Assembly: GCA_038496445.1 (NCBI GenBank)
Contig: JALMLS010000404.1
Location: 62,001 to 126,000, forward strand
Direction of reading: 5' to 3'
DNA from: Trichosphaerium sp. ATCC 40318
Lineage: Eukaryota > Protista > Tubulinea
Length of the DNA stretch: 64,000 nucleotides
A program made the position numbers and the translations under genes. Shown piece by piece: positions 2,942 through 61,587 of this stretch (positions are counted from its first letter, which is position 1; every line of letters begins with the position of its first letter). A model generated the notes under the pieces. The model searched no databases. It was not told where the DNA came from and worked only from the letters and a program-made list of their open reading frames with translations.

Positions 2942-3871
2942 TTAAGATGTCTTATACATTGTAAGATTTACAACATTGCTTGTAACAGTTGAGCAATGTC
3001 CAAAAATAGAATTAGTAAGCCCTCGATGTTTTTCCTTTTCAGTATTGATTGTAATGAATACTTGAAGAGGGAAAACATCTGGTGTTTCATCATGTGCAAC
3101 AAAAACTTGATGTCTTATACCTTGAAGCGCCAAAGTACCAGGAGGTAGAAAGGGTGGAAATATGGATGGATTGATAAACTTTTCAAAACGCATCGGTACC
3201 TTGTATGTAACTGTACACCCAGGGTTCAACGCCTCATGAAAGTGGCGATTTTTTGAAAAAACAGTCTCACCGTGAAGATAGTGTTGGTAATTGTCGAGAA
3301 ACCCTTTAGGATCCTTTATTTCAGGCTTCCAAATATAAAAACAACTACCTCCTTCAATAAGATGGCAATCATCAAGGCTTGCCCCATAACCAAGGTACAC
3401 TTTCTCACGTGTTTTACCAATATTCTCGAGTGTAAGTGTGAATGTTATTGTGTCGCCTTTGTGAACATGGGTCTTGTCACAACTCAACTCTGAGATGATA
3501 TTTGAACACAATCTGTTTCGATACTTCTCTTTCCACGTGACTGCATCAAGATTATACAAAGTAGGCTTCTGCTTGCGCCTATAATATGACATTTGCTTAT
3601 TCTTAGCACTTGCGATGCGTTTGTGGATAGCAGACTCTATTTCTTCAGCGTCAAGACCCCATTTCTGATGATACAAATGTCGATAAATGTAATCTGAGTC
3701 ATTTCGTATCAATTCGCATAGATAATGGTTTGATTGTTGTAAAGATGCTAAATCTTGCCACAACAAATTGTTGCTAACGATAATACTCAAAATTATCTCG
3801 ACAGGCAGAGAAAACAAATCTGTTGTAGATGATCGTGATGTATCGAAACAACCACTACGTTTGGTCGTCAT
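2942..3871 (-). CDS. F-box + Ig-like (CARDB/DUF11-like) protein, family copy 1 (~309 aa)
   Basis: Intronless ORF. Start set at MTTKR (3871) by alignment to paralogs. F-box LFSLPVEIILSII..WQDLASLQQSNH; motif HVHKGDTITFTLTLENIG. Confidence 0.85.
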   Translation of the reverse strand: MTTKRSGCFDTSRSSTTDLFSLPVEIILSIIVSNNLLWQDLASLQQSNHYLCELIRNDSDYIYRHLYHQKWGLDAEEIESAIHKRIASAKNKQMSYYRRKQKPTLYNLDAVTWKEKYRNRLCSNIISELSCDKTHVHKGDTITFTLTLENIGKTREKVYLGYGASLDDCHLIEGGSCFYIWKPEIKDPKGFLDNYQHYLHGETVFSKNRHFHEALNPGCTVTYKVPMRFEKFINPSIFPPFLPPGTLALQGIRHQVFVAHDETPDVFPLQVFITINTEKEKHRGLTNSIFGHCSTVTSNVVNLTMYKTS

Positions 3872-4898
3872 TGCTCTTATTTTAAGATACGGTGCTCGTA
3901 AACCACAAAACAATATTCCGCGCTGAACAAATTCAAGGGTTGAACGACATAGACTAAGAGTAGAATTGAGTCCCAGATTAATTCGCCCAGAAACGTCCGT
4001 AGTACATTGTAGCACGCTGCATGGTTTAGGTTATACATTATCAGGTAAAGGTATGTACAGAGGAAAGAAATAAACACAAAACACAATGGCTTGAGGATAA
4101 ACAAAATGGTGAAACCATAAGATGGCATGAAACTGAGTTCTAATCAGGAACTCTGATAAATTTCTGCTTGAACACCCGGTGGTGTCTAACAACCTCGTAG
4201 AACAAAGAATTATACCAAATATACGTTAACATACTGAGAATGCGAAAAGAAAGCAAGACAAAATGCTTGACGTTTATTATGTAAATGTAAAAGGCAATAA
4301 ATAAAACTAAGACATTTTTAATAATAATGTGCGTTTACAGTTGTTGTAAACTTTTGTACTTTTCACGCTTGGCATACAGTATTAAATAAAGCGTTTAAGC
4401 CTATGTGTGAACACTTACATAATATAGCTCTATAGACACGGTAGAAGTGAACTGGTAACCTTGCGGCTATGGTGACCTTTTTTGAACTCTGTGTAGCCAA
4501 GTGTTCGGGATTGACGTTAAGTTGCAACTTATTGAATGGAAAAAAAATAAATTTCTCTGAACAACAACACAGTATTTTTACGCTCAGCCCAAAATAGTTT
4601 CAAGTTTACGAAGTAAACGCTATTTTTGGGACTATTACTACTAGTCACTTGCTCCCTTTTGAATCTGTTGTACTGAGTGGCTATCAGAGAAATATATTAG
4701 AATGAGTTGACACTTGACAGTAGTGCAAAATTTTCTTCACAAAATTTGTAGGTATACACCCTGTTCGCCTACAGATACAGTTGTAGTTATAATATGTTCT
4801 TCCCACATTTTTTTTCTTTTTTATTTGTTTGTAGTTAAATAAGATATCTCCCAGATCTACAAATGTGGTGCAGATAGTCAACGTGTCTTTCATCGTTT

Positions 4899-5010
4899 AA
4901 GGTCATTGGTTCGAATCCGATTCAGGCGTCGATTACGCCTCATGCAGTGATATCTGCAAGAGGAGGTTAGCCTGGTAGCTCAGTTGGTAGAGCGTACTCC
5001 TAGTAAGAGT
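4899..5010 (+). tRNA. Circularly permuted tRNA-Thr(AGT)-like sequence: 3' half (4899-4929) precedes 5' half (4969-5010); functionality unknown
   Basis: 3' part AAGGTC-ATTGG-TTCGAAT-CCGAT-TCAGGC covers variable loop, T-arm and acceptor strand. 5' part AGCCTGG-TA-GCTC-AGTTGGTA-GAGC-G-TACTC-CTAGTAA-GAGT covers acceptor strand, D-arm and anticodon arm (AGT). The halves pair over 6 bp in the acceptor stem and join at ~position 42/43. Confidence 0.75.
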
Positions 5011-5375
5011 TTATAATTACATCGTTTCATCAGTCTGGTTGGTGGTTTAAGAAAAACCCTAACTGGACTAATAAAATTTAAAGTCACGTGATGCGATCAC
5101 CACTTTTTTTTCCTAGCTTGTTTGCAATAGAAACCTTGGAAGCCATTCGAACGCTGAAAAGTATCCAACAAGTTGTGCAATAGCGTATGTTGTAATTAGC
5201 AGTAGGCAAGAAAGTGATGGCGTGCTCTTACTTTAGAAGGGCGTAACTTACTTTGTTCAGGTCTCTTTTGTTTGTAAATGACGGGGGTACACTATTGTTT
5301 ACAACGCTTTTGTCACATCAATACCTATGACTGATGAAGATACTCTGGAAAACGAAACCATCGTAAACATTTATT

Positions 5376-5670
5376 TTATTTGGCGTATTGCCTGTTCATA
5401 CAAGCAACGTCGCGAGTACATCTACTCTTAACTTGTACACACCAAGCAGAATCTGCGATATTTGGAGGTGATGACTGAAGAGCTGCTTTCAAGTCTTTAA
5501 AACCACCAAGTCTTGGACAACCCAAGTTAAACGCAAAGTCAACAATAGCGGATCGTTGAGAGCTTGTAAGCCTGCTGAAGTTCGAGCCTACATAAGACCT
5601 TTGCACAGCTCAATGCTGTGGAAATATCTTGGTTAAACAAACTTATTATTGCCCGTAATTCAAGCATTCG
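5376..5670 (-). pseudogene. T4-type (GH24) lysozyme C-terminal lobe, frameshifted remnant
   Basis: AIVDFAFNLG..RLGGFK.LKAAL and DSAWCVQVKSRCTRD match the phage-lysozyme C-terminal pattern. Upstream LFNQDISTA is in another frame. No catalytic N-terminal lobe is visible. Confidence 0.65.
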
Positions 5671-5986
5671 GTACGTACACAAAAAAGAAACTAAAGTCAG
5701 GGAACCTTCCTAATCATCAACCAGATGTTGTTGACAATTTCTTTTCCCACCAAAACTGGTGACTGGCTGTGAAAAACTAATGAAATTTCTGTTCCAACGC
5801 TGTACCGAAAGAAAACCGAAATCGCTTGCTGAGTGCTTATTAGAGGTTTTCCAGTGTGGTAACGCCAAAAATCACTAATGGCTGGTAGAATGGGAGCGAC
5901 TGTAGGCAATTTGACCTATAACGGAAGTCATTTGGGAAAAACTCAGAATTTTCGTACGCTTTTTATTTTTTTCACTACACGCGATA

Positions 5987-6703
5987 ATGTTGAAGCTTGT
6001 ATTGATTTTATCTGTTATTGTATGCGCTCTTTGTTGTAAACCAGGCGAAAAGGACTGCGAAAATGTAGATCTTGGCTCGTACGGTTTTAAAACGACTAAT
6101 TTGTTATGCTATAGCTTCTTACGCGTGTTGTTAGTTGTGGTGGAGCTTGTTGCAGCACTACAGTCGTGTTTATGAAATCTTCCGCAGATGAAGTCGTCGC
6201 TGCCATTAGACAATCACTTGCCACTGGTGGACCAGATAGACGGTAACTGTTTTATATTTTCTCCGCTCCAAACCGCTCATATTCGTAGTTATGCGCTTCA
6301 AACTACTGCTGAAGATGAGAATGGTGGTTTAGGTACGCATACAGCGTATTTCATTCGTATTAACCCATTTTGATTAGGTTTCCTTAACCTTGAGCCTTAT
6401 AACATCTCCACTGGCGTTCAGCGTCTCGGACAAGTATGGCATACTACTACGCCAGTTCCTTACCATGGTACAAACGCTTAAAACGAAGAATTCGCTTCTC
6501 TTACTAACGCGCTTCTAGATACAATAAATATTGCCTTGTACCCAACTGCAGACAACACTGGTACACGTGCCAACGCTTTTTCTATCTCCCAAATCGCTGG
6601 AGCTTACGGTGATGCTGGACAAAACTACTGGAATATTATCACACTTATCAAGTCTCTAAACTTGCCTTACACCATTGATATTAACTTTGGATGCGGTAAA
6701 TAA
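5987..6703 (+). CDS. Secreted protein of unknown function (multi-exon)
   Basis: Signal peptide MLKLVLILSVIVCALC. Exons split by GTAC..AG introns give DLGS|CGGACC ... GAYGDAGQNYWNI ... FGCGK*. Confidence 0.65.
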
Positions 6704-7259
6704 ACAATTCACAGCTGTGTTTGAAATTATTATTGAAGTTCTTGTTTTTTTGTAAAGTGTTCCGCACTGTTTCATTGAAAAAACAACAGAATGAGTAATA
6801 GCGGCTTGCATACAGTTCTACGCGCGTAGTGCGCTATTGAATACTTTTATGTGACATTTTTTGGCTTTCTCGTGCAATAAATAGAAGTCAGCATTGCAAT
6901 TATGTTAATGGTAGATACGAAGGTGAGTATGTAGAGTATACTAGTGAGTACCGCCGTTACAACCACCCCCTTGATCACTGGTTTATTAACAATGAAGTAG
7001 AAGCAAAGATCAAACGTTTGATCTGTATCAAAACGTAAAAAACAGTACCTTTTGCAGATATGTAATCTGTATCAAAAAGATGTACAATAACACTATTTTA
7101 TTACCGTTTCTTTCATATTCATTCATACCACTACAACGTCCACAGTCATTATGACACCTTCGTTTGTGACTGTAGTTACCCTTAGATTATTTGTGCCAAC
7201 ACCACTCAGCGATCAGGTCTTCATTTGTTCATACAATACTAGTGTTGTACGCTGGAGTT

Positions 7260-9139: not shown

Positions 9140-9399
9140 CAAGAAGTAATAAACTGCATGACGGATTACGAATAAAAGCTAGCATAGGTTAATGTCAGTT
9201 TAATATTGTTCACAAAAAACCAAGTATTACGGGTAGAGTGGTTGCCAACTCCTTTCGTAGACGCAAGTGAGTGAAGATGGTAAAATTAACAAAGCAACTG
9301 TTTGACAAAATTTTTTGGCTTGGTGAGCGCTTTTTTATTTTTTTCTACAATTTTTTTTTAAAGGCACAAGCCTCGGCCATAACGGTCGTAAAAATTGAT

Positions 9400-12222
9400 T
9401 TAATCGACACCCTCCATTTCGGAGACTTCATCGCCATCATCTTCAGCCAAAGGAGGAAGCTCATCATCAGCAATATCATCGTCATCATCGTCATCGATGC
9501 TTAGACCGAGTTTGATCATTCTGTGGATACGTGCAGCAAATGTAGTTGGTTCTTCAAGGTTGAATCCAGAAGTCAACAAAGCTGTCTCAAATAGAAGCCA
9601 TACAAGATCTTTTACGGTCTTGTCGCTCTTATCAGCGTCGACTTTGTTTTTGAGTTCCTTTACAATAGGGTGTACAGGGTTGAGTTCGAAGGTCTTTTTG
9701 GATACCATGTATGTTGACATAGATGTATCACGGAGAGCTTGAGCGCGCATGATTTTCTCCATGTATGCGGACCATCCGAATTCACCGGTGGTGAGACAGC
9801 AAGGGGAGTTTACAACTCTAAAAACAAGAGTGAGAAAACGAACTCGACGAAGTCAAAACAAAAAAAAGCAAACAAATTAAAAAAAACTTTGTACCTGTGT
9901 GTTGTGACGACTTTCTCGACCTTGTCGTCCAAGATTTCCTTTACGGTCTTGCACAAGTTTTCGTAAGCAACTTTCTCTTCTTCCATTGCTTTCTTCTCGT
10001 CCTCAGATTCACCGAGATCGACACCGTCTTTTGTGACGCAAATGAACTTTTTGCCGTCGAATTCTTTCAATTGTTGCATGCCGTACTCATCAATAGGCTC
10101 AGTCATGTACAATACTTCCAATCCACGCTTCTTGAGACCCTCAACGAATGGAGAGGATTCAACAGATTTCTTGGAGTCACCAGTGATGTAGTAGATACCC
10201 TTTTGGTCTTCCTTCATACGTGTGATGTACTCTTTGAGTGAGGTGAAGTCATCACCAGATTTTGTAGAGTAGTAACGGAGGAGGTTGGCCATACGGTCTC
10301 TGTTTGTGGAGTCCTCGTGGATACCGTATTTAAGGTTACGAGAGAATGATTCGTAGAATTTTTTGAAATCTTCTTTGTTCTCAGCGATCTCTTCGAACAT
10401 TTCGATAGCCTTCTTTACGAGATTCTTACGGATGACCTTAAGGATCTTGTTTTGTTGCAAGGTTTCACGGGAGATGTTGAGAGGAAGATCTTCAGAGTCG
10501 ACCATACCCTAGCGTAAAAGATAAGCAACAAATTCGTTGAAGAGGATCATCATAAAAATAAAAAGCGCGAAAACGCTCACAAAAGGAGTTCAAAAAGCGT
10601 ACCTTAACAAAGTTGAGCCATTCAGGGATGATATCTTCACAGTTATCCATGATAAAGACACGTCTGACGTAAAGTTTGATGTTGTTCATCTTTTTACGGT
10701 TCTCGAACAAATCGAATGGAGCACGTTTTGGTACAAAGAGCATAGCAGTGAACTCTAATTGACCTTCAACAGAGAAGTGCTTGACGGACAAGTGTTCTTC
10801 CCAGTCGTTTGTGAGACCCTATCGTAGAACGTAAGCAAGAGAACAATAAAAAAAAATAACGCGTAGGCGACTAAAAAACGACGAGAAAAAAAAAACAACG
10901 TACCTTGTAGAATGAAGCATACTCTTCTGGAGTAACTTCTTTTGGGTTACGAAGCCATAGTGGTTTAGTCTTGTTGATTTGTTCCCATTCTTTGACTTCC
11001 TTCTTGACCTTCTTTGTCTTTTTGGCCTCTTCTTCGGCATCTTCTACCTTTGGTGTATCATCGTCACCCTCTTTCTTCTCGGCATCATCTTCACCTTCTT
11101 TTTTCTCAGCATCTTCGCCTTCTTTCTTTTCGGCTTGTTCTTTGAGTTCTTCTTCAGTGAGTTCAACTTCTTCTTCTTCCTCGCGTGTGGTCATGAGGTT
11201 GATTGGGTATTGGATGAATTGAGAGTGCTTCTTGACGATATCCTTGATTTTACGTTCTTCGATGTACTCGTGTTGGTCGTCCTTGAGGAACAAGGTGATT
11301 TGGGTACCACGACCGAGAGTGTTACCGGCAGGGTCGCGACGGATGGTGAAGTGACCACCAGCTTCAGATTCCCAGATGTACCTTTGAAACAGAGTGTAAG
11401 CGAGTGGCTTGGGGCGTATAGAGAACAAAAGGAAGAAAAAGAGCGATTTTGATCGAATAAAAGAAATAAAAAAAGTTTTTTTCTTTTTTGTGTTGAACTC
11501 AGTCAGTAACGTAGATATCGACACGGCATCAATTCCGTCCGCCCGTTCGCAATGCATCATAGTACACAAAGAAAAAAGAAGAGAGAAACCAGATAAAGAA
11601 AAAGCAAGGAGCGTGCGTGTAGAAGCACGTGAAACGTGTTTTGAAAATAAAAAAAATTGAAAAAAAATTAAAACGGAGAAATAAACGTACTGTTCGTCGT
11701 CATTGTGCTTGGTGATGACAGTAACTTTGTCAGCTACAAGGTATGCGGAGTAGAAACCGACACCGAATTGACCGATCATGCTGACATCAGCTTTACCTTC
11801 GCTGAGAGCCTCGACGAAAGCTTTTGTACCAGAGCGTGCAATGGTACCCAAGTTGTTTACCAAATCGGCTTTGGTCATACCAATACCGGTATCACGGAGA
11901 ACCCATGTTTTACCTTCAGGATCACTGGTAATTTCGATCTTTAGCTCCTTCTCAGAGTCCAAAGCATCTTTTTGGGTCAAAGATTGGTAACGAATCTTAT
12001 CAAGAGCCTAGAATGAAGCGTTAGAGGTGAACGAAAAGTAGATCAGCGCGTTTGGGGCAAAATATAGTTTCCAAGGTTTTTCCGTACGTCAGACGAGTTG
12101 GAAATAAGTTCACGAATGAAGATTTCCTTGTTGGAGTAAAATGTATTGATGATCAAAGACATCAGCTGGTTGATCTCAGCTTGAAAGAGAAACGTCTCGA
12201 CTTCGCCTGTTTCTGCCGCCAT
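9400..12222 (-). CDS. HSP90: Cytosolic heat shock protein 90; introns 12008-12087, 11382-11690, 10819-10903, 10509-10602, 9818-9894
   Basis: Signature motifs [65 protein letters not shown]. All five introns restore the frame. The C-terminus is MEGVD. Confidence 0.98.
11487..11570 (-). ncRNA. Box C/D snoRNA, U43/SNORD43/snR70-like, in HSP90 intron 2
   Basis: Terminal stem TTTGTGT/ACACAAA; box C-like ATGATG; box D CTGA; guide ACGGGCGG followed by D'-like CGGA. The guide is antisense to the conserved 18S segment CCGCCCGT. Confidence 0.8.
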
Positions 12223-12329
12223 GTTGTATAGTTTATTGTTATTTACTACGGGACGTGTTGTAACAAAGGGTTAAGCAATCACGAAAACACTGAAACACCA
12301 CGGAAGTTTGCAAAATATTTGTTAATTTC

Positions 12330-13405: not shown

Positions 13406-14521
13406 TTATTCGTGCATGGAAGCCCATTCATCAGCATTATTAAAAGCAAACAAGGTGTTTGTACCGTAAATAGGACCATTGATCTTGGTTATATGATCGT
13501 TAGAACCAATATTCCAATTTGCAATTAATCCAGATCCTCCATTACCACTAATATAGCTCCAGTTATTATTAACTAAACGGAGTGTTTGAGACCATCCGTT
13601 ATGATTCATAGCTACAAGTGAATCTGTAGGAGCATTCGAAGAAATGTCGAAATCTCCTGCGATGTACTTATCAGTTGCGGCAATAATCCAAGCTCCTGCT
13701 ATCATTCCGTGACCGCCTTCAGCGTACTTGAATGTTTTAGTGACACTGTCGAATCTCATGGTATGATGCCATCCGTTAGGATTGATAGCCAAGAGGTCCT
13801 CTACAGGGTGATCGTAGAAGGCACCAACGACATATTTATCAGCAGGTCCAATAACCCACCAGTGTATTTGTCCTGTTGTTGTACTTGATAGTATATCCCA
13901 TTTTTTTGTGTTTCTATTGAACATCATCACGTGGTATTCCGATGACTTTATCAAAACAACGTATGATGCTGGGTCAGGGTTAACTACTTCAAATCTTCCT
14001 GAGATTAAGGTATCCGAAGCATCAATGTCGCCGTCAACAGCGTATTGGAGTTGAGTCCATTTGAAGCCGTGCATATTGTTAATGTACGTCAAATCAAGCT
14101 TGTACGTTGCATATTTACCGTTAGGGTTTGCAATAAGAAGAGACTTTTTACCGTAAGCGTTAAAAAAACCAGAAACGTATTTATCGTCGCTAGCAGTTTG
14201 CCAGGTACCAATAAAGCCTTGACCGCTTTCGACAGCATGCCACTCTAGAGAAGTATCGTCTAAGTACGCTAACATCCATTGAACACCAGGCTTGATGAAC
14301 AGAGTGAATGCTCCGTGGTTTTGGTGAAACAGTATCTCCATTGGTATGAAGCGATCTCCTGGTTGGATATCCCACGTTATAGTAGTGAACGGTCCAGTAG
14401 GGTTAAAGAGGTTTGGGTATCTTTTTGCAACGAGTTGGGAAGCTCCAGCATGAGGTTGCCAGTAAGCTGACACTGCGCAAGTGAATAGCGTGAGTAGGAT
14501 GATACAAACGTGTTGTTTCAT
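13406..14521 (-). CDS. Secreted FG-GAP/VCBS-like beta-propeller repeat protein (intronless, 371 aa)
   Basis: Signal peptide. Repeated ~55-aa units W.I...DKY..G.F....D.L.A.N.NGW. Confidence 0.75.
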   Translation of the reverse strand: MKQHVCIILLTLFTCAVSAYWQPHAGASQLVAKRYPNLFNPTGPFTTITWDIQPGDRFIPMEILFHQNHGAFTLFIKPGVQWMLAYLDDTSLEWHAVESGQGFIGTWQTASDDKYVSGFFNAYGKKSLLIANPNGKYATYKLDLTYINNMHGFKWTQLQYAVDGDIDASDTLISGRFEVVNPDPASYVVLIKSSEYHVMMFNRNTKKWDILSSTTTGQIHWWVIGPADKYVVGAFYDHPVEDLLAINPNGWHHTMRFDSVTKTFKYAEGGHGMIAGAWIIAATDKYIAGDFDISSNAPTDSLVAMNHNGWSQTLRLVNNNWSYISGNGGSGLIANWNIGSNDHITKINGPIYGTNTLFAFNNADEWASMHE

Positions 14522-23621: not shown

Positions 23622-24289
23622 GGGACGATTTTTGTAAGCTTACAGTTCACACTTTCAAAAAAACTCTAGTGCATCTCAAAAACACTACTTTTACCCACAT
23701 TTAGGGTATGCTTCAGAGCACATATGTGGCTATAATTGATATAAACCAGAACTTGCTGGTAATTAATAGTGTGCTTCAATCAACTATTTCATTGAAACTA
23801 AAACTGAGGTTGTTCTGCCTGGTATCATATTTTGCTCCTCTATCACCACCATGTTTTGCAGGTAATTCTTTTACAGCATAGTGAGTAAGGATTACATTCT
23901 TTCGTTTAAGGCATTTTTTGTCACTTTCAGTGTACCACATAAAGCTATCGTCACCTGTCTCTAGACCTGATTGTTGTAAATTGGTCATTCTTTTGAGCAA
24001 TCATTCTAAGCCACAGATACCTTTTTCAAACCTTTACTTTTGGCTGCAGGTGCTCAATAAATCATTGTGTACCTACGCACGGTTATAGCATATTTGATGA
24101 TTTAGGTATCAAAACACAGAGGTTTCTTTTTCAAGGAAGCTGATGAACATATAGTTAAGTCTTAAAAAAAATGCCACAAGTAAATTAACTAATTTATTCC
24201 ACTTAACAATAGAGCCATTCATTGCAAACGTACATTCACACCGGATAAAGCATTGATATGAGGTGTGGACCGCTTACAAAAATCGTCCC
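23622..24289 (-). mobile_element. Non-autonomous TIR element, copy A (18-bp TIR GGGACGATTTTTGTAAGC, TA target duplication)
   Basis: Perfect TIRs at 23622-23639 and 24272-24289, each flanked by TA. The interior is homologous to copy B. Confidence 0.9.
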
Positions 24290-25286
24290 TACAATCCACA
24301 AGCGTAATAGTATGAACACCAGCCAATGTTTTAACACCATCATCCGTTACTTTATTACAGTAAGTTAGATTAACTGTGTGGGCTCCTGCTAAGGCTTTAA
24401 CACCATCATCTGTTATTTCATTACACCTGTATAGATCAATAGTATGGACTCCTGCCAATGCTTTAACTCCATCATCTGTTATTTGAATACACCAAGATAG
24501 ATCAATTGCATGAACCCCTGCCAACGCTTTAACTCCATCATTCGTTATTTGATTACACCAATATAGGTCAATAGTATGAACTCCTGCTAAAGCTGCGACT
24601 CCATCATCCGTTATTCCAAAACAACATCTAAGTATAATTGTATGAACGCCAGCTAAAGCTTTAACACCTTCATCTGTTATTAGCTTGCTGCAGTATGATA
24701 GATCAACTGCATGAACTCCTGCCAAAGCTTTAACACCACAATCTGTCACTTGATAACATTTAGAAATACTAATTGCATGGACTCCCGCCAATGCTTTAAC
24801 TCCATTGTCTGTTATTTGAGTACAGCAAGATAAATCAATTTTCCGTATTCCAGCAAGCTGAGCAACCATCTCATCATTCACGTCAGCCTTCATACTGGAA
24901 TGAAACCATCCAACTTTATATGTGGTAAAGCTAATACTATCAATGACTTTGAACCCACTAAAGTCAATATTTTTGTCCAACTTGGACAGTTCGAGCGCAT
25001 AAGCGCCATGTAGGTACTGCAAATCTTTTTGGTTGATACGAAAATCAATAGTAATTGTACTTGTACTGATTAAATGTCTAAATCTCTGAAACAACGTTCT
25101 GAGCCTTCTTCTAGATTTAATAATAATTTTTCTACCACTCGTGTATCCTATATGCTGTACTGCGATATCGGACAATAAATGTGATGTTTGAGCAACTGAA
25201 CGCATGGAGGACGCAGGAACAAACTGTAGAATGTTAACTGTTAATTCAACGGGTATCTCATCAAAGAATGCGGTATTTGAGTTCAT
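24219..25286 (-). CDS. F-box + ~9 x 22-aa LRR protein; last 23 codons supplied by the TIR element
   Basis: F-box FFDEIPVELTVNILQFV. Tandem LAGVHxIxLxxCxxITDDGVKA repeats. Intronless. Confidence 0.9.
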   Translation of the reverse strand: MNSNTAFFDEIPVELTVNILQFVPASSMRSVAQTSHLLSDIAVQHIGYTSGRKIIIKSRRRLRTLFQRFRHLISTSTITIDFRINQKDLQYLHGAYALELSKLDKNIDFSGFKVIDSISFTTYKVGWFHSSMKADVNDEMVAQLAGIRKIDLSCCTQITDNGVKALAGVHAISISKCYQVTDCGVKALAGVHAVDLSYCSKLITDEGVKALAGVHTIILRCCFGITDDGVAALAGVHTIDLYWCNQITNDGVKALAGVHAIDLSWCIQITDDGVKALAGVHTIDLYRCNEITDDGVKALAGAHTVNLTYCNKVTDDGVKTLAGVHTITLVDCRDDFCKRSTPHINALSGVNVRLQ

Positions 25287-25600: not shown

Positions 25601-27111
25601 ATGGCTTTTAATGATCGAATTAAATTATTTTTGGCTTTAAGCGTGTTTATGGTGTTCGCATTTATATGTATGGGCAACTACATAACGTATAAGACGAGTT
25701 CACCTGAGAATATAGATAGACTAATAAAAGTACGTTTTATCGCTTCTACCAACGAAATCATATGCTAACAATTGGTTTGAAGGGTTTTTTGCTTACCCAA
25801 AAAGCAGCTTCGCTTAACGCCAATAAAGAGCCGTCAAAAGATGTTAAACACGATGACAACGCGGATGAGAATACCGGAGAGGGCAATAAAGCACCTCTAC
25901 CGCTACCAGGAGGTAATACAAACAAAGACCTATCGGACAAACCGCAAAACTCAAAGATAGAACCTATAGACATCTCAACACTTGATACAGCTGCGAAGAA
26001 ACGCGCTAAAGCCGACGAGATGAATTCTAAGCAGTTTATTCACAATAACGATAAATTCTCGTTCGTGCCATCAGAGATGTCAGTTATATTTCTCATACAG
26101 GTACACGTGCGTGCGGATGAATTGAGGCACACATTAGATTCTCTGAGAATGGCTAAGGATATTGATAAGTCGCTTATCATTTTAAGTCATGATGTTTTTT
26201 CGCAGGATATTTTTGACGAAGTCAAGAAAATCGATTTCACGAGTTATATTCAATTATTTTTTCCTTATGCCACTGATTTATACCCTGACACATTCCCTGG
26301 ACTTGACCCAAGAGATTGTGTTTGGAATGTATCTTACGCCAAAGCAGAAAAAAGCGGATGTCAGAACTATGCTTTTTCGGATGCTCATAAACATTATAGA
26401 GAGCCGCATATAACTCAGCTTAAACATCATTGGTTATGGAAGTTACACTTTGTTTATCAAGGTGTTGATATACTTAAAGGATATGATGGCGTTATATACC
26501 TACTAGAGGATGACTTTTATGTCAGCCCTGACGCAATTCATTTTGCTTCGGCTATTGAAAAACAAGCAAATGAACAATGTCCTGACTGTCTACTCTTCAG
26601 TGTTGGTAGATTAACTGATCGTGGCCCTGATTTTAGTAATTCTGGCGATGTAAATATCACGTGGTTTAATACAGATAACTCAGCGCTTGTTGTAAGACGA
26701 AATTTTTGGGAAAAACTTAGAGGTGAATGTGGTCAGTTTTTTTGTGATTTTGATGATTATAACTGGGATTTGACATTAGCAGCGATTTCAGGGAAATGCA
26801 ATCTTAAGACTTTCAAGGCAAAAGCAAATCGTATTATACATATAGGTAGATGTAAGGGTACACATGTTATGGGTGCGTGTACTTCAGATACAATTAAAGC
26901 GAAAATAGATGCGTTCATGAAGAAGGAAGTCAACCTCTTTCCTACAAAACTTACTTTTGCCAAAGAACCAAAAAAAATGTCTGAGAGTATAAAAGCTCAT
27001 GGTTATGGTGGTTGGGGTGATATAAGAGATAAATATTTATGTAAGAGTTTTATATCTGATCACGTGGACAAAGATGTTTTAGAGAAGGCACATGGAAAGC
27101 TGAAAATATAA
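25601..27111 (+). CDS. MGAT2: Alpha-1,6-mannosyl-glycoprotein 2-beta-N-acetylglucosaminyltransferase (GnT-II, GT16)
   Basis: Signal-anchor exon from 25601, then one intron. Motifs LIQVH.R, QLFFPY..YPDTFPG.DPRDC, TQLKHHWLWK, LEDDFYV, FCDFDDYNWD, GGWGDIRD. Confidence 0.92.
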
Positions 27112-29166: not shown

Positions 29167-30108
29167 ATGGCAATGAAACGCATCACGTGTGTTGATACAT
29201 CAAGTACAGAAGTCACAGGCTTGTTTTCGCTTCCAATTGAGATACTACAACATATTATTGTTAGCAACGACCTTTCATGGCAAGATTTGGCTTCATTACA
29301 ACAATCAAACCATTATCTGTGCGAAATGATACAAAACTCATCAGATTACATTTATCGTCATTTGTACCATCATAAATGGGGTCTTGATGCTGAGGATATA
29401 GAGTTCGCTGTACATCAACTTATCCGCAGAAAAGGGTGTATGCGCAAGTCTCCCCATTCAGAAGAAATGCCAACTTTGTATAATCTTAATGCAGTCACGT
29501 GGAAAGAAAAGTACAGAAATAAACTCCTTCCAAATATTATCTTGGAGTTGAATTGTGACAACAAACATGTTCACAAAGGACAGACAGTAACCTTCAAACT
29601 TACACTTCAGAATATTGGTAAAAAACAAGAGCAAGTCTACCTTGGCCATGGCTCCAATTGGATACCCGATCATTATATTGAAGGTGGAGATGTTGGTTAT
29701 ATATGGAAGCCTATTATCACAGATCATCGGTTTCTCAACAATTTCAAGAGCGACCACGCATTTGCTGCTCATTTTTATGGAGTGGGCAATGATCACTCTT
29801 ATTTTAAAATGAACCCAGGGGATAGAAAATCATTTGATATGCCATTACATTTTGATAACAAGAAATCACAGTTAAAATTTAAATCTAGAACAACTTACAT
29901 ACCTCCTGGTTTATTGTCTTTTCAAAGTAAAATCTGTGAAGTGATGGTTGCATGTGATGAAACACCAGATGTGTTTCCTCTTAAAATATTTGTCAAACTA
30001 CACACAGCCAATCACGTTCCGTTTGAATTTAAGGGTCATACTAAGATGCATTGCATAGCAGTAACAAGCAATGTTGTAAATCTTACAATGTACAAAACAC
30101 GCCAATAA
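29167..30108 (+). CDS. F-box + Ig-like protein, family copy 2
   Basis: Intronless 313-aa ORF with all family framework motifs. Confidence 0.88.
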   Translation: MAMKRITCVDTSSTEVTGLFSLPIEILQHIIVSNDLSWQDLASLQQSNHYLCEMIQNSSDYIYRHLYHHKWGLDAEDIEFAVHQLIRRKGCMRKSPHSEEMPTLYNLNAVTWKEKYRNKLLPNIILELNCDNKHVHKGQTVTFKLTLQNIGKKQEQVYLGHGSNWIPDHYIEGGDVGYIWKPIITDHRFLNNFKSDHAFAAHFYGVGNDHSYFKMNPGDRKSFDMPLHFDNKKSQLKFKSRTTYIPPGLLSFQSKICEVMVACDETPDVFPLKIFVKLHTANHVPFEFKGHTKMHCIAVTSNVVNLTMYKTRQ

Positions 30109-30377: not shown

Positions 30378-31271
30378 ATGGAAATAAAAGGGGTCATCAC
30401 ATGTATTGATTCATCAAACGCAGTTACAGACTTGTTTTCGCTTCCTCTCGAGATACTACAACATATTATTGTTAGTAACGACCTTTCATGGCAAGATTTG
30501 GCGTCGTTACAACAATCAAACCATTATCTGTGCGAAATGATACAAAACTCATCAGATTACATTTATCGTCATTTGTATCATCAGAAATGGGGTCTTGATG
30601 CTGAAAAAATAGAGTCCGCTATCCACCAGCATACCAAAATACAAGAGCATATAAATAATTATGAGCATCCCATGGCTTATTTCTTGTCACCCAAGTTGCG
30701 TAATCTTGAGTCAATCACGTGGAAAGAGAAATACAGAAATAAACTTCGTCCAAACATCATTGCAGAGTTGAATTGTGACAACAAACATGTTCACAAAGGA
30801 CAGACAGTAGCATTCAAACTTACACTTCAGAATATTGGCAAAAAACAAGAGATAGTGGACCTTTATCAAATGGAAAATGGTGATGCTATTTGCATTTGGG
30901 AGCCTATAATCACAGATGAAAGAGGGTTTCTCTACAATTTCAAGAGTATCCACAATTATTATTTAAAACGGGAAATTGGTTCTGGTTGTGCTAGATTGAA
31001 TTCAGGGGACCAACAAACAATAGAGATACCATTATTGTTTGATAATTTTAAGTCAGATGTAGGATGTTCTAGATCTAGAATATTCAAGCTACCTCCTGGT
31101 ACATTATCTCTTCAAGGTAAAATCTCTGAAGTGATGGTTGCATGTGATGAGACACCAGATGTGTTTCCTCTCCAAGTATTTGTAAAACTCTATGTTTATG
31201 CATTTTCCAATAGTAAAAATCCAATAGTTTCAAGCAATGTTGTACATCTTACAATGTACAAAACACACTAA
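30378..31271 (+). CDS. F-box + Ig-like protein, family copy 3
   Basis: Intronless 297-aa ORF; framework conserved; loops 2 and 5 are shortened. Confidence 0.88.
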   Translation: MEIKGVITCIDSSNAVTDLFSLPLEILQHIIVSNDLSWQDLASLQQSNHYLCEMIQNSSDYIYRHLYHQKWGLDAEKIESAIHQHTKIQEHINNYEHPMAYFLSPKLRNLESITWKEKYRNKLRPNIIAELNCDNKHVHKGQTVAFKLTLQNIGKKQEIVDLYQMENGDAICIWEPIITDERGFLYNFKSIHNYYLKREIGSGCARLNSGDQQTIEIPLLFDNFKSDVGCSRSRIFKLPPGTLSLQGKISEVMVACDETPDVFPLQVFVKLYVYAFSNSKNPIVSSNVVHLTMYKTH

Positions 31272-31726: not shown

Positions 31727-32674
31727 TTAAGATGTCTTGTACATCGTAAGGTTTACAACATTGCTTGTAACAGTTGAGCAATGTCCATAAACAACCTTGT
31801 TACCCCTAGTGTTATAAACCCTTATATGTGAATCCTTTAAAGTGTTGAGTTTTACGAATACTTGGAGAGGAAACACATCTGGTGTCTCATCACAAGCAAC
31901 CATCACTTCAGAGATTTTGCCTTGAAGAGATAATGTACCAGGAGGTATTTTAGACTGCTGCAACGCTAGAAATAATCCTCTTAATGGCTTTAAGTTGTCA
32001 AAAAGTAAAGGTATCTCAAATGTCTGTCTATCTCCTGGTTGCAGAATACGAGCAAGTCTATCTAGTTCAAAATATTCACGTTCAATCTTGTAATTTTGGA
32101 ACAACTCACCAGGATTTATGACAAGAGGTTTCCAAATATACACAGCACCTCCACCTTCAATTCGCTGACAATCATCAAGCCTTGAACCAGTACCAAGGTG
32201 TACTGTCTCTTCCGTCGTACCAATATTATGAAGTGTAAGTGTGAATGTTATTGTGTCGCCTTTGTGAACATGGGTCTTGTCACAACTCAACTCCGAGATG
32301 ATATTTGAACACAATCTGTTTCGATACTTCTCTTTCCACGTGACTGCATTTAAATTATACAAAAGAGTAGGCCCATAATACCTACAATATGACAATTGCT
32401 GATTTAAAGCAAGTGCGATGTGTTTGTGGATACCAGACTCTATTTCTTCAGCATCAAGACCCCATTTCTGATGATACAAATGACGATAAATGTAATCTGA
32501 CGAGTTTCGTATCATTTCGCACAGATAATGGTTTGATTGTTGTAACGAAGCTAAATCTTGCCATGAAAGGTCATTACTTACAATAATATGTTGTAGTATC
32601 TCGATTGGAAGCGAAAACAACTCTATGACTTCCACGCATAATGTATCAACACGTGCAAGCCGTTTAGGTGTCAT
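31727..32674 (-). CDS. F-box + Ig-like protein, family copy 4 (mosaic)
   Basis: Intronless 315-aa ORF, convergent with copy 3. Confidence 0.88.
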   Translation of the reverse strand: MTPKRLARVDTLCVEVIELFSLPIEILQHIIVSNDLSWQDLASLQQSNHYLCEMIRNSSDYIYRHLYHQKWGLDAEEIESGIHKHIALALNQQLSYCRYYGPTLLYNLNAVTWKEKYRNRLCSNIISELSCDKTHVHKGDTITFTLTLHNIGTTEETVHLGTGSRLDDCQRIEGGGAVYIWKPLVINPGELFQNYKIEREYFELDRLARILQPGDRQTFEIPLLFDNLKPLRGLFLALQQSKIPPGTLSLQGKISEVMVACDETPDVFPLQVFVKLNTLKDSHIRVYNTRGNKVVYGHCSTVTSNVVNLTMYKTS

Positions 32675-32979
32675 TTGAACTTTAAATAATTATAATTTGG
32701 GCAATCAGTTTTCACTGAGCGACACAGAAAGATTTTTGACAAATAAACAAAGGATTGGTTTTTATGGTTTTATTTTTTTGTACAGGGTTAGGCAACATAT
32801 AAAAGTAAAGAATATTCTGCCTCACATGTATCATGATCCAATATTCGAAAAAGGATAAGTAGTAGAGAGGGCGAAAATCGTATTCTTTTGTGTGTAGAAA
32901 AAATACCCAACAAATATCATTATTATTTCTTTTTTTGTTCTTGTTTTTTTTTTTTTCAGTTCTTAGGCCTGGTGTGATG

Positions 32980-44041: not shown

Positions 44042-44974
44042 ATGGCAACTAAAGAGCTTATGCGTGTTGTTGTACTATGTATAAAAGTCACAGAGTTGTT
44101 TTCGCTTCCTATTGAGATACTACAACATATTATTGTGAGTAACGACCTTTCATGGCAAGATTTAGCTTCGTTACAACAATCAAACCATTATCTGTGCGAA
44201 ATGATACGAAACTCGTCAGATTACATTTATCGTCATTTGTATCATCAGAAATGGGGTCTTGATGCTGAAGAAATAGAGTCTGATATCCACAAACGCATCG
44301 CACTTGCTTTAAATAAGCAATTGTCATATGGGCCTACTTTGTATAATCTTGAGTCAATCACGTGGAAAGAAAAGTACAGAAATAAACTACGTCCAAACAT
44401 CATTGCAGCGTTGAGTTGTGACAACAAACATGTTCACAAAGGCGAGACAGTAACATTTAAACTTACACTTCAGAATATTGGCAAAACGCAAGAGATAGTA
44501 CGTCGTAATTATGGCTCTACTGTTGGTGAAGACCATCGAATTGAAGGTGGTTATTCTGTTTGTATTTGGAAGCCTCTTCTTAAGAATACAGGAGCTAATT
44601 TTGATAATTATAAGACAACGACCTTCCATGGTTTCGTTTCTGAGGTGCACATGGAAGAGAAGGACTATTATTTTACAATGAATCCAGGGGATAAACAAAC
44701 ATTTTATATGCCTTTACTTTTTGACAACTTTGAGCCAACAGAATTTAACGTTGCTCCTCAAATACCTGGTACATTATCTCTTCTAGGCAAAAAGTATGAA
44801 GTGTTTGTTGCATGTGATGAAACACCAGATGTGTTTCCTCTTAAAGTATTCGTAAATCTCAGTTCTCAAAAGGAGGTTTTCAAAAAAAACCATCAAGGGG
44901 ATAACACGACTGTTTGTGGACATTGTTCAGCTATTACAAGCAATGTTGTAAACCTTACAATGTATAAAATGTGA
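44042..44974 (+). CDS. F-box + Ig-like protein, family copy 5
   Basis: Intronless 310-aa ORF starting ~50 bp after the TIR element. Confidence 0.88.
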   Translation: MATKELMRVVVLCIKVTELFSLPIEILQHIIVSNDLSWQDLASLQQSNHYLCEMIRNSSDYIYRHLYHQKWGLDAEEIESDIHKRIALALNKQLSYGPTLYNLESITWKEKYRNKLRPNIIAALSCDNKHVHKGETVTFKLTLQNIGKTQEIVRRNYGSTVGEDHRIEGGYSVCIWKPLLKNTGANFDNYKTTTFHGFVSEVHMEEKDYYFTMNPGDKQTFYMPLLFDNFEPTEFNVAPQIPGTLSLLGKKYEVFVACDETPDVFPLKVFVNLSSQKEVFKKNHQGDNTTVCGHCSAITSNVVNLTMYKM

Positions 44975-45717: not shown

Positions 45718-46720
45718 ATGGAGAGTAATAACCAAAATACCATTTCTACGCTTGGCGAAAGACAATCGTACGTTATTTAACCAAAATACCCGTATTCATA
45801 CGCTATCAAGATCTACAAACCTCCTGGACATACCTGTCGAGATTTTAACGCTTATTCTGACAAATACTGAACAAGCACGTTTCTCAGCAGCGCAAAGCTG
45901 TCAACTACTTAGTTCTATCATCCATAACATCGTTGGGTATAGTACAGTGGCAATAAAAACGTTCGCTCAAGCGTACTTGTTTAACGAAGTGTTCCCTTTC
46001 GAAACAGCAAGAAGGAATACACATATCATCATCAAAACGAGTCTAGTCAAGGACAGCACAAACAACGATGGAGATGACATTGTAACAATCCTTGCCGGAT
46101 TTAAAACATTGGGTATTGAAGGTCTATTCGGTGGTCTTGTTGTTGAAGAGCAAGCCCTTGATAGTACTAATGAGTGTGGGTTACGTACAATTGACCTAAG
46201 TCTATCTTCAGCATCAGACTGTAGTATTAAAATGCTTGCTGGTATTCATACTATAGATCTAAGAAATACTTTTGTTGGAGATGAAGGACTTCAAGCTCTT
46301 GCTGGTGTACATACTATCAATTTAGAGCATTGCTCGATAAGTGATAAAGGTGTAAAGGCTTTAGCTGGTGTACATACTATCAACTTGTGTTATTGCTATG
46401 CGGTTAGTGATGTAGGTGTCAAGGCTTTGGCTGGTGTTCATACGATAAACCTTTCAAGAACACGTGTTACTGACGCCGGTTTAAAATATTTAGTTGGAGT
46501 ACATACCTTGGAGATCATCAGTACATCTGTTAGTGATGATGGGATAAAGGTATTGAAAGGTATTCATACGTTAATAGCGTACCATACGCGCGTCAGCGGG
46601 AATGTTACAATTCCTGGGATACAAGTTTTTGTTCATAAACCTCCGGCTAAAAAAGAAACGAATCTTGTTTTTGAAGACAGCTCTTCTGACGAAGACCTTG
46701 GATTCTCTCTTTTTGGTTGA
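45718..46720 (+). CDS. F-box + 21/22-aa LRR protein with a P-stalk-like acidic tail; intron 45768-45810
   Basis: ATG at 45718 is joined in frame by a GTACGT..AAG intron. F-box LLDIPVEILTLIL; LAGVHTINL repeats; ends EDSSSDEDLGFSLFG*. Confidence 0.85.
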
Positions 46721-54949: not shown

Positions 54950-55476
54950 TTATGAGCAGGCACATGTGAATGGAGAAAACAATGGGATAATAACGTCAAT
55001 TAATTGCAGAATATCATCGCACAATACTTATGGATTGTAACAAGTTGGGATTATTTATGTAACACTATCTTGTGCTTGTTCTTAATTTGATGTTCATTTT
55101 TGTTTTGAGAATATCATCGCACAATACTTATGGATTGTTGGTGTTATTTTATTTGCATTGTAATGCTGGCAGTTGGTTTTTTGATTATTTATGTAATTAG
55201 CACTATCTTGTGCTTGTTCTTAATTTGATGTTCATTTTTGTTTTGACTCTCATTGTATTTTCCATGTTTCCAGCATATGCCGTTACATACTCCATAGAAA
55301 GTCAATTGCATTGCAATATTCCATAAGGTATATTTTGACTCTCGAAGTTATGACCTTTATTACTCCACTTATCTTGTTAGAAGTCAGTTTCAGCGACAGT
55401 CTTTTTTGGTTGGTTTTAAGTCACATCGTCCTTAGAAGTCTTTCGTTATCAATTTTTTTTATGTATTATCTAAAAG

Positions 55477-57800: not shown

Positions 57801-58191
57801 GTGACAGTAGAATCACGGGATTGATACCATATATTACTACCACTTTAGCAACGCTTGTGCTCTGGTCATGTGAATCAACAGTTGTTGCTTACTTTTGTTT
57901 ATTAGCAGTGGCGTATGTGCCAATATGAGCGTTTGACTGTATAATCAAGCAAGCACAACCAACATTGGCAAATTGGGTAAACTAAAGAAAACCTGAAATA
58001 ACCAAACGTCATATCACGTGATAGCTCATTATAAAATAACACGAGATATTTTAAATTAATTATTTAGCTGGTTCGAGTTGAACGACGCTGACAAACATCA
58101 GGCAGAAAAAAATCAAGTCTTTTCGATTTTAAGCCTATTCGTCCTTAATCGTTTTAAAATTGACTTCCCTTCTCGTACATATGTCTCAAAC

Positions 58192-60004
58192 AAGGATGAG
58201 AGTGTATTATTTTATGATATGGATCGCGTGGGTTACTGCAGTACTTGCTGGTTAGCCTTATTTATTTTTTGTCTTTATGTCTTCGCACAAAATATACACT
58301 TACAAAGAGCAAAGCACGCCCGTCTGGTAACTCACTGTACTTTTCTGGCGTCTCTGGTGATATTAGTGAAAATGGTAATGGAGCGCTCAAGATCAAGTTA
58401 AACGCTACTGAATATGATGAGTTTACATTCGCTGCATGGATAAACTTCGCCAGGTAAAAGAATTCTTTTCCTTCCCTTAATTGCCAAAACAATATTGAGC
58501 TCGTTACCTATAATTAGGGTTTGTAATGCAACAGAAGAAAATTGCAAGATTGATACGATATTTACTAGTAAGTATGCTGGGTGTTACCGTTCAGGAGACG
58601 CATTATTTGTTGGTACGAAGGAAAATAACTGCTTTTAAAAAAGGACCACGTGCTCACAAAAAAACAAATAAAAGGGAAACACGATGTTGGTTTGCAACAG
58701 CTTACTTATGAAAATGCAATTGATAGTTGCTTTGCTTATACTACTGATAATTATCTGGTACCATCCAATGAGTGGGTAAGTAGTAGAAACAACAAAAGTT
58801 TTAAAAAAAAAGATCAAAACATGTTGCCTTCATGTCGCTTCTATGAATACGCTTAGTATTTTGTTCAGGTTTTGGTGGCGTTTACACGTTCTTGGATATC
58901 AAATATGACAACAAAATACTTGATTTCTGACAGAGTGTTTCGCTTTAATGAGACTTTCAATGATTTGCCTCATACAACCATTTCAGAATGCTATATTGGT
59001 GGCTTCCCTGATCCAGTCCGTATTGTTCATAGCTTCAATGTACATTAATTTTTCACTTGCCCATTTATTTGTTAATACGTGCATAATTAGGGAAGTATTG
59101 ATAACGTTGGAATTTGGTCAAAGGTTCTTTCTGAAACAGAAATATCAAATTTTGCTTCGAATCCTTTTGACGATAGTGATCATGACAGTCTTATTGGATA
59201 CTTTACTTTTGATAACCAACTTGCTCCAAACGGCGATATTACAGATACAGAAAACAAAGTATTTGCAGAGCGAATAGGAACTGGAGCAAAACCACTTTTT
59301 CGTAAGTCATCGAAAAAAAATCACAGAAGTTAATTTACAGATTAGAATATGGAACACAATTGTCAGATTTACCTATTTCTCCTCCTACAGAATCTCCAAC
59401 ACTAACACCAACATTAACACCCGCCCCGATATCAAGTTGCATAAATGGGAGTGTATTTGATGACAGTTTTTGTGATGGAGATACTGTTATTGTTCCTAAA
59501 GATGTGGTTGTATTGGACACACATTTCCTTGAAGATAACATTATAGTTAGAGGTACAACAAAGCAACACATTCAAAAATACGCTGTAATTTTAGCAACAC
59601 TAACAGTGTTGCATATAAGGTGACTTTACCTTGGGATCAGGAGGAGCTCTTATATTCAGTGAGAATACAACAATAACTGTTGATGATTGTGTGACTTTAG
59701 AAGGCGAGATTGTATTGAATTTCATTACCTCTTCCAAAGTATCACTCATCAGATGGAAAGAAAATTGTGAAGCTCCGAAGTTAGATTCATTCACTGTTCG
59801 AAACACCAATGGTTGCTCTGTTGAGGCATCCATATCAGGTACAAGACTCTTCCAATGTTGCCAACTGAGAAATTTATAAGGGCAAACACTCCTTGTTCTA
59901 TTACAGGTCCCATCACAAGGAAAGTGTAGCAACGGTTCAATAGCAATTAGTGGGTATATACTTGTTTCTGTAATAATGTGGTTTGTACTCATGTAGCAAA
60001 TAAA
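58192..60004 (+). repeat. Direct ~1.8-kb duplicate of 55477-57259 (LamG receptor-like copy B, truncated after the first TM)
   Basis: Long near-identical blocks, including an intron. Homology stops after gtactcatgtagcaaataaa. Confidence 0.9.
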
Positions 60005-60615
60005 ATAAAACTGAAAAAAACCCAAACATTCTGATATCAACGGCAATAAAAGAATACACTATTGTCAATGTCATTTCTGTTTACATATTAACCAATGGGA
60101 ACGTAGAATTGTTGGAAGAAGAAAATAGAGATTAAAGATAACAATAAATGAATCCAACTTATTGATACTCCTATTTGGTTGTAGCAGTGATTCTGAAGGA
60201 AGAGAAAAATGCTGTTCTTACTTCCAAGTTTTTTACTATGCTTTTACACATTGCTTTTTAGATCAGTTTGGCTCCTGAAAGACTTATATCGTTTGAACAT
60301 ACTGAGTACAATGACTAGTAAAACAATCTGTCATATTGCCAATATAATTGTTGAATCTATGCTGCCATTGACATTTTGTTTAACACTCTTTGGTATTAAG
60401 GCACACATAAAGGCACCATAGTGATTGATGATATATGATATCTACATGATTTGACAGAAGCGTCAATACTGGTAAGCTCTGCCAAAAGTGCTAAGAAGTC
60501 ACTTTCTCCAGAAAATAAAGTATAACGAACTGAGATGGACAATTAAATAGCACGTGACTCGTTTAGTGAAGAAAGTTCAAGACCAAAAACTTTTTCAATT
60601 TCAAACAACAGTAAA

Positions 60616-61587
60616 ATGGCAACTCAGCAATTCGCACGTGTTAATACTTTACTCACGGAAGTAACAAACTTGTTTTCGGTACCGATCGAGATACTTTTAC
60701 ATATTTTTGTCAACAACGACCTTTCATGGCAAGATTTGGCGTCATTACAACAATCAAACCATTATCTGTGCGAAATGATACGAAACGACGCTGATTACAT
60801 TTATCAACATTTGTATCATCAGAAATGGGGTCTCGATGCTGAAGAAATAGAGTCTGTTGTCCATCAACGTATCGTGCAAGATTTTAACGCTCGAAAGCCC
60901 TTTTTGGACGCGTCGTCACGTATTCAAATGTCATCAACTTTTTACAATCTTGGTGCAGTCACGTGGAAAGAAAAGTACAGAAATAAACTCTGTCCAAACA
61001 TCATTGCAGAGTTGAGTTGTGACAAGAAACATGTTCACAAAGGACAGACAGTAACACTCAAACTTACACTGGAGAATATTGGTAAAACGGAAGAGACAGT
61101 ACACCTTGGTACTGGGTCAAGGCTTGATGATTGTCATCTTATTGAAGGAGGAAGTGCTGTTTATATTTGGAAGCCTCTTGTCAGAAATCCTGGTGGGTTG
61201 TTCGAAAATTACCAGATCGAAAACGATGTACCTGGATATTTTAATGCAAAAATACATGATGAATTTTTTATTGAACTGAAACCAGGAGATAGACGTACAT
61301 TTGAGATACCATTACTTTTGGACAGACTGAAACGATCAACAATAGCACCACGGCTTTTAATGGGGCCATCTGACCCACCCTCTGGTACATTATCTCTTCG
61401 AGGCAAAATATATCAAGTGTGTGTTGCTTGTGATGAAACACCAGATGTGTTTCCTCTTAAATTATTTGTAAAAATCAATACTGAAAAGGAGTCGCATAGA
61501 GCAGCTCATTTTAGTATATTTCATGGACATTGTTCGGCTGTTATAAGCAATATTATAAACCTTACAATGTATAAGACGTCCCAATAA
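60616..61587 (+). CDS. F-box + Ig-like protein, family copy 6
   Basis: Intronless 323-aa ORF with all framework motifs. Confidence 0.88.
   Translation: MATQQFARVNTLLTEVTNLFSVPIEILLHIFVNNDLSWQDLASLQQSNHYLCEMIRNDADYIYQHLYHQKWGLDAEEIESVVHQRIVQDFNARKPFLDASSRIQMSSTFYNLGAVTWKEKYRNKLCPNIIAELSCDKKHVHKGQTVTLKLTLENIGKTEETVHLGTGSRLDDCHLIEGGSAVYIWKPLVRNPGGLFENYQIENDVPGYFNAKIHDEFFIELKPGDRRTFEIPLLLDRLKRSTIAPRLLMGPSDPPSGTLSLRGKIYQVCVACDETPDVFPLKLFVKINTEKESHRAAHFSIFHGHCSAVISNIINLTMYKTSQ

Follow-up and report, generated by a model that had tools for sequence, protein, structure and literature searches.

Six genes and a relic within 59 kb

The stretch of DNA considered here, which we refer to as the window, comprises 64,000 nucleotides of the genome of Trichosphaerium sp. 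ATCC 40318 (contig JALMLS010000404.1, positions 62,001 to 126,000 of the forward strand), and carries a family of six paralogous genes whose products join an N-terminal F-box-like motif to a C-terminal domain built of conserved blocks and variable segments. Naming the copies by position, these are g3k (2942-3871, minus strand, 309 residues), g29k (29167-30108, plus strand, 313 residues), g30k (30378-31271, plus strand, 297 residues), g32k (31727-32674, minus strand, 315 residues), g44k (44042-44974, plus strand, 310 residues) and g61k (60616-61587, plus strand, 323 residues), with g29k and g30k in tandem. A reading of this DNA made from its letters alone, hereafter the sequence-only reading, had described six intact, intronless paralogs; translation bears this out, each being a single-exon open reading frame (ORF) of 297-323 residues, free of stops between the coordinates given. 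Its inventory was incomplete in one respect. Using tblastn, frame translations and hmmsearch of the six-frame translation, we found a decayed, partial seventh copy on the plus strand, consisting of three collinear pieces (2628-2723, 2774-2812 and 2851-2904) that lie in three frames, are interrupted by stops and cover positions 175-276 of the family profile. This copy is tail-to-tail with g3k and directly follows an ankyrin ORF (1901-2440). Six copies and one relic thus lie inside 59 kb, three of the copies inside 3.5 kb.

The only full-length relative of the family among 1.84 billion representative proteins is P0001, found by an exhaustive HMMER search with which a homologue search agrees. P0001 is a complete ORF of 333 residues from an MMETSP transcriptome, is 50% identical to the family, and has the same start and end positions and the same framework blocks. 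It follows that the single-exon gene model is right, that the family is transcribed in a relative, and that the framework is conserved between species rather than merely homogenised inside one genome. Of the six copies g3k is the most similar to P0001, next to which the trees place it, and in the trees the tandem neighbours g29k and g30k pair with each other.

We conclude that the six ORFs are genuine nuclear genes, each of a single exon, and belong to a lineage-specific protein family of a marine protist. This conclusion rests on the integrity of all six ORFs, on a ratio of nonsynonymous to synonymous substitution rates (dN/dS) of 0.24-0.42 across the framework in every pair, and on the agreement of their boundaries with those of the P0001 transcript ORF; furthermore, ORFs of about 300 codons are very improbable by chance in DNA of 36% GC. 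Three public sequencing runs, all from one sample, contain contigs that match exactly over g29k (29303-29971, run X1) and over the 5' part of g32k together with 126 nt upstream (32369-32800, run X2). In addition, fragments of a copy resembling g61k and of one or more further, diverged copies occur in these runs. One X1 contig, 249 nt in length (29244-29513), agrees with g29k in two conserved blocks and departs from it in the intervening 143 nt, which indicates at least one paralog besides g29k in the sample.

Aligned end to end, the six proteins share 53-66% pairwise amino-acid identity, with 118 of 331 columns invariant, and this identity is sharply bimodal by region. Mean pairwise identity is 0.88 in the F-box block and 0.53-0.76 in the other framework blocks, against 0.29, 0.33, 0.21, 0.10 and 0.24 in five variable segments, V1 to V5, whose lengths range over 17-26, 4-13, 27-34, 11-17 and 10-23 residues respectively. 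V2 and V5 are shortest in g30k, and the first 19 residues, which form a leader, are variable too (identity 0.37). The blocks quoted as near-invariant by the sequence-only reading are present in the alignment, WQDLASLQQSNHYLCE, KWGLDAE, TWKEKYRN, CD..HVHKG.T, LTL.NIG, IW.P and VA.DETPDVFPL being identical in all six copies, and variation is confined to three small points: g61k has L in place of the F in F.LTL, PPG has S for its second P in g61k and I for its first in g44k, and SNVVNLTMYK is near-invariant, with two conservative variants (SNIINL in g61k and SNVVHL in g30k). The peptides that the same reading had quoted for the last loop, V5, are correct. Phe, His, Tyr, Gly and Arg are over-represented in the loops, where aromatic residues and His together make up 21%, compared with 11% of the framework. 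This composition suggests structured, possibly binding, surfaces rather than disordered spacers or linkers.

Domain layout and placement of the variable segments

Each protein begins with the 19-residue leader, continues with the highly conserved F-box-like motif, predicted to form three helices, and a helical extension (residues ~20-82), and passes through the V1 linker into a predicted beta domain of ~190 residues. The F-box consensus runs LPxEIL..I...L...DL..L..V.K.W..L, and the family sequence LPIEILQHII...LSWQDLASLQQSNHYLCEMI is, we take it, a good fit to it. In all six copies the best Pfam match is to F-box-like (PF12937), spanning model positions 3-46 of 47 with E-values of 8e-5 to 1e-2; the scores are 16-20 bits for whole proteins and reach their maximum of 22.7 bits (E 8e-5) with the N-terminus of g61k alone, the curated cut-off being 24.3 bits. 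The F-box named by the sequence-only reading is thus upheld as the top match throughout the family, though at scores under that cut-off. A full-length AlphaFold model of low confidence (mean predicted local distance difference test score, pLDDT, of 44) shows three short helices (residues 23-32, 37-46 and 48-56) and, after them, a long one, and the models place this three-helix motif ahead of a separate all-beta C-terminal domain, which is how F-box proteins are laid out. That full-length model was too poor to serve as a query for structure searches. The window also contains two intronless ORFs that combine an F-box with leucine-rich repeats (LRR; Pfam LRR_6). When the N-terminal profile of the family was compared by hhalign with the F-box region of the first of these (45752-46720, plus strand), the probability was 70%; the F-box of the second (24219-25286, minus strand) gave no significant alignment to the same profile. 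Taking these results together, the N-terminal motif is probably an F-box.

The sequence-only reading had recognised a CARDB/DUF11-type immunoglobulin-like (Ig-like) pattern in the C-terminal domain. The pattern is real, but is confined to an A'-B strand motif at the start of that domain. Pfam scores for DUF11 are 12-13 bits (cut-off 24.6) and for DUF7927 14-16 bits (cut-off 31), in both cases over residues 127-158 only, and hhalign against 31 DUF11 repeats aligned 26 columns with a probability of 92%. No DUF11 or CARDB profile matched the whole domain over its curated score; in g61k there are weak Pfam matches also to the MOV-10 Ig-like domain and to BsuPI. The proteins that follow P0001 in the exhaustive search are likewise large multi-repeat proteins, which match only short parts of the profile. 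Six of the 24 were scanned with Pfam, and are multi-repeat Ig-like surface proteins (DUF11/CARDB-type, FN3 or LapA). Most of those scanned carry DUF11, DUF7927, DUF7507 or CARDB repeats, each matched repeatedly at profile positions ~123-160; one has 32 DUF11 repeats, 31 of them matched by the profile, and a type IX secretion signal. An FN3 protein, P0003, matched at profile positions 196-287, was considered as a relative and rejected (hhalign probability 6%).

For structural comparison, the C-terminal domain of g30k, which is the shortest, was modelled by AlphaFold from a seven-sequence alignment. The model is all-beta, with a pLDDT of 52.5 and a predicted template modelling score (pTM) of 0.59; the low confidence of the structure models is a consequence of there being seven sequences only. 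Every search with this model returned Ig-like or E-set sandwiches among the matches listed, with Z-scores of 6.9-9.4 over 93-119 of the 190 residues. These include Spo0M (Z 9.4), RbmA (9.2) and the Ig-like domain of AlkC (9.1), transglutaminase C-terminal domains, TRAP, MG domains of alpha-2-macroglobulin and BsuPI, and also CARDB (3idu, Z 6.9) and the ApaG domain of FBXO3 (Z 6.9). The best Foldseek match had an E-value of 4e-4 and a template modelling (TM) score of 0.40. It is important to note that, according to the structure-search tool itself, a model that has no clear match will typically reach Z ~7-8 at best, and since the values obtained lie near this background we take from them the fold class only. 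An all-beta Ig-like sandwich, as the sequence-only reading had envisaged, is the most likely fold: judging from the low-confidence model, the C-terminal ~190 residues would comprise a beta-sandwich core of ~100-115 residues and ~75 residues of insertions. We also considered a metal site formed by conserved Cys, His and Asp residues; this was dropped, as of these residues only C131, D132 and H137 are the same in all seven sequences.

Where the variable segments lie on this domain bears on the proposal of the sequence-only reading that they occupy inter-strand loops in the manner of the complementarity-determining regions (CDRs) of antibodies. On the strand map of the low-confidence model, V2 is predicted to separate the IW strand from the one that follows the NIG turn, V3 to connect the IW strand to the one ahead of NPGD, V4 to come after the long TFEIPLLF strand, and V5 to fall between the VFPLQVFVKL strand and the last strand, NLTMYK. 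V2 to V5, which fall largely in stretches with pLDDT below 50, are thus placed between predicted strands, as proposed. All five segments do vary in sequence and length, but V1 lies outside the beta domain, in the linker between it and the helical F-box region. Other loops of the domain (NIGK, NPGD and ACDETPD) are invariant. Furthermore, V2 and V3 flank a single 12-residue framework block, C3, with one predicted strand, and by strand order they would therefore be expected at opposite ends of the sandwich. The model accordingly does not lead us to expect one CDR-like tip, and the five segments need not share one surface. The term antibody-like survives as an analogy only: Pfam gives no V-set immunoglobulin similarity for any family member, the structure matches listed, mostly sandwiches of E-set type, contain no antibody variable domain, and nothing points to somatic diversification.

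Recombination, selection and origin

Along the length of each gene the identity of the nearest paralog switches. This is clearest in g32k, for which nucleotide windows show g44k to be nearest over codon windows 1-120 (with 93-100% identity over codons 16-105), g3k over windows 106-165 (up to 99%), g61k over windows 151-240, g30k over windows 241-300 (up to 93%), and g3k again over windows 286-330. An incompatibility test of the pairwise homoplasy index (PHI) type gave a permutation p<=0.001, and permutation tests of the longest identical run gave p<=0.0025 for four pairs. Because both kinds of test ignore rate heterogeneity along the gene, the switching pattern carries more weight than they do. 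That the paralogs are nucleotide mosaics of one another indicates gene conversion. The flanking DNA of the copies has no similarity visible by eye, from which it follows either that the duplications are old or that conversion has been confined to the coding sequence. Framework dS is 0.28-0.68, well under the saturated dS of the loops. This fits conversion acting on the framework, though errors of alignment can also inflate dS in the loops. The presence of one relic copy suggests birth-and-death evolution.

Recombination among the paralogs has a practical consequence, in that site models assuming a single tree would be invalid and tree-based tests of selection are undermined; our estimates for the loops are pairwise. 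Over all pairs, the loop ratio of nonsynonymous to synonymous differences per site (pN/pS) is 0.7-1.2 and saturated. Taking for each variable segment the least-diverged pair, we obtained a pooled omega (dN/dS) of ~1.5, with 58.5 nonsynonymous differences over 205 sites and 10.5 synonymous differences over 56 (p=0.17), while V3-V5 alone gave 1.75 (p=0.066). For the closest pairs, point estimates exceed 1 in V1, V3, V4 and V5. The loops are far less constrained than the framework, and neutrality is not rejected. Loop dN/dS is statistically indistinguishable from 1, and is thus compatible with neutral decay, one of the outcomes by which the sequence-only reading would itself have had its proposal refuted.

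Several explanations of this contrast may be considered. The first is that the variable segments are no more than surface loops and a linker, free of constraint, on old duplicates, drifting neutrally and conferring no specificity, while purifying selection and conversion keep the fold and a conserved binding function that resides in framework patches (the invariant CD..H.H, NPGD and DETPDVFPL). The saturated all-pairs ratio and the failure of the least-diverged pairs to depart significantly from 1 speak for this explanation; the flanks lack visible similarity, so that neutral sequence has already been randomised, and several framework loops are invariant even in another species, as P0001 shows. 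Set against it are the narrow ranges within which loop lengths are kept, the richness of the loops in aromatic residues and His, which is unlike disordered spacers, and the omega of V3-V5. We regard neutral loops as possible though rather doubtful; were they the answer, this would be an ordinary paralog family of unknown function.

The second builds on the proposal of the sequence-only reading, and is that of a germline repertoire of antibody-like cytosolic receptors whose loops would be under diversifying selection to recognise foreign (viral, bacterial or endosymbiont) proteins, which would then be sent to the proteasome, with conversion shuffling loop cassettes between copies. The contrast between framework and loops together with the mosaic structure, and the point estimates of omega above 1 in four of the segments, speak for it, and there is a precedent: in expanded F-box families of nematodes and plants, according to PMC8120010 (citing Thomas 2006), purifying selection acts on the F-box and positive selection on the substrate-binding domain, and nematode families have been linked to responses to viruses and microsporidia, an immune role being suggested but not established (PMC8120010). 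The window, however, holds six copies and one relic only, and the related species contributes a single transcript. Moreover, positive selection did not reach significance, V1 falls outside the beta domain, and V2 and V3, flanking one short strand block, would be expected at opposite ends of the sandwich. We therefore consider such a repertoire improbable, while noting that it would, if true, amount to cell-autonomous 'degrade-the-invader' immunity outside animals and plants.

The reading that we prefer, with a probability of roughly 0.6, is that these genes encode a lineage-specific family of substrate adaptors for Skp1-Cullin-F-box (SCF) ubiquitin ligases, in which an F-box is joined to a beta-sandwich with paralog-specific loops, and which evolves by local duplication, loss and conversion. 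On this reading the F-box would dock on Skp1, which the window does not encode, within the SCF ligase, the beta-sandwich would recruit the protein to be ubiquitinated, and each paralog would owe its own targets to its loops. The family would have evolved by local duplication, by loss (of which the relic is one case) and by segmental gene conversion; conversion and purifying selection would hold the framework similar, and the loops would be left to drift or diversify.

Several results weigh against this reading. At the N-terminus, the F-box-like score is under the curated Pfam cut-off (24.3 bits) in every copy, P0001 has no Pfam match of any kind, and a profile of the N-terminal 110 residues, compared with the PDB at E<=10, does not match any F-box chain. 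In the C-terminal domain, the alignment to DUF11 spans 26 columns only, and both AlphaFold models are of low confidence (pLDDT 44 and 52.5). Loop dN/dS is not significantly above 1. Finally, the matches in public runs are contigs from libraries whose kind is unrecorded, and show presence in the sample rather than transcription.

A further explanation concerns the origin of the cluster rather than its function. Giant viruses and intracellular bacteria both encode expanded F-box families, and acquisition of the genes from such a source would account both for the lack of introns and for a DUF11-like motif of prokaryote type. The family is intronless, while the neighbouring HSP90 gene (9810-11980, minus strand) is broken into two or more ORF pieces and therefore contains introns; the DUF11/CARDB-type proteins recovered by our exhaustive search, moreover, include a surface protein of bacterial type, the one noted above for its 32 DUF11 repeats and type IX secretion signal. 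The surroundings, on the other hand, are eukaryotic. The window has an even G+C content of 0.35-0.40, the copies lie among ordinary eukaryotic genes, namely HSP90, MGAT2 (25762-27111, plus strand, a single long ORF) and an ORF encoding a VIT domain, and the MMETSP transcriptome shows the homologue to be expressed by a related species. Neither viral contigs nor metagenome contigs yielded a relative, and the exhaustive protein search yielded no full-length one besides P0001. A non-cellular origin thus seems very unlikely to us.

Some further features of the window may be recorded here. The F-box family genes, the F-box-LRR ORFs and MGAT2 each form one long ORF, unlike the split HSP90. The ankyrin ORF next to the relic is the second of two adjoining ORFs at 1171-2440 (plus strand) and carries ankyrin repeats (Pfam Ank_2, E 5e-13), while the first shows an LP..V motif close to its beginning and is acidic in its tail. 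An ORF of 371 residues with an ATG start lies at 13406-14521 (minus strand) and has no Pfam match at E<=0.1. A RING-finger ORF is also present. A standard ARAGORN scan, beyond whose reach permuted genes lie, found no tRNA in the window.

Comparison with known F-box and immunoglobulin-like families

The scaffold and its host lineage are new: the family has no Pfam entry, and one full-length homologue among the 1.84 billion representatives. Exact look-ups of P0001 and g29k returned no record, and a feature search of the ESM Atlas gave scores of 0.80 at most, within the range expected by chance. Nematodes and plants are known to have lineage-specific expansions of F-box adaptors whose target-binding domains evolve fast and whose role, in immunity or as a product of drift, is debated, and the present family adds a protist case. 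It also illustrates, on a small scale, how gene conversion acts on the framework that paralogs share. The proteins are small (~300 residues), encoded by single exons and furnished with clearly bounded loops, and are thus practical for loop-swap, Skp1-binding and substrate-trapping work.

Among F-box proteins with a comparable architecture, FBXO2/Fbs1 (with its FBA domain) and FBXO3 (with its ApaG domain, PDB 5hdw) consist, as this family is predicted to, of an F-box, a linker and a single beta-sandwich. The family shows no sequence similarity to either, and its domain extends to ~190 residues with four long insertions; the match to the ApaG domain of FBXO3 (Z 6.9) ties with dozens of unrelated Ig-like domains. 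With DUF11, CARDB, DUF7927 and DUF7507 (PF01345, PF07705, PF25549 and PF24346) the family shares the A'-B strand motif CD..V..G.TVTF.LTL.N.G, but this similarity ends after ~26-35 residues, with Pfam scores of 12-16 bits against cut-offs of 24.6-31. In contrast to repeats of that type, the family domain is nearly twice as long, is present in a single copy, lacks a signal peptide and is fused to an F-box.

As in immunoglobulin variable domains, a conserved framework, here one of predicted beta strands, carries inter-strand loops that vary in sequence and length. The likeness ends there, however: V-set similarity is lacking, the variability is germline only and exists between a handful of paralogs, and by strand order the loops would alternate between the ends of the sandwich, with one of the five lying outside the domain altogether.

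The likeness to the F-box families of nematodes (FBA2/FTH) and plants goes further. There too, paralogs are clustered in tandem or inverted arrangement and turn over by birth and death, and there too the F-box is strongly conserved (88% here) while the C-terminal domain, presumed to bind substrates, is far more variable (10-33% in the loops). The differences are that the C-terminal domain here is a putative beta-sandwich with a DUF11-like start, unrelated to FTH, FBA or LRR; that the host is a protist, with few copies in the window and marked conversion mosaicism; and that positive selection is demonstrated in the nematode and plant families only. On balance, the family resembles these known fast-evolving F-box families more than it does antibodies.

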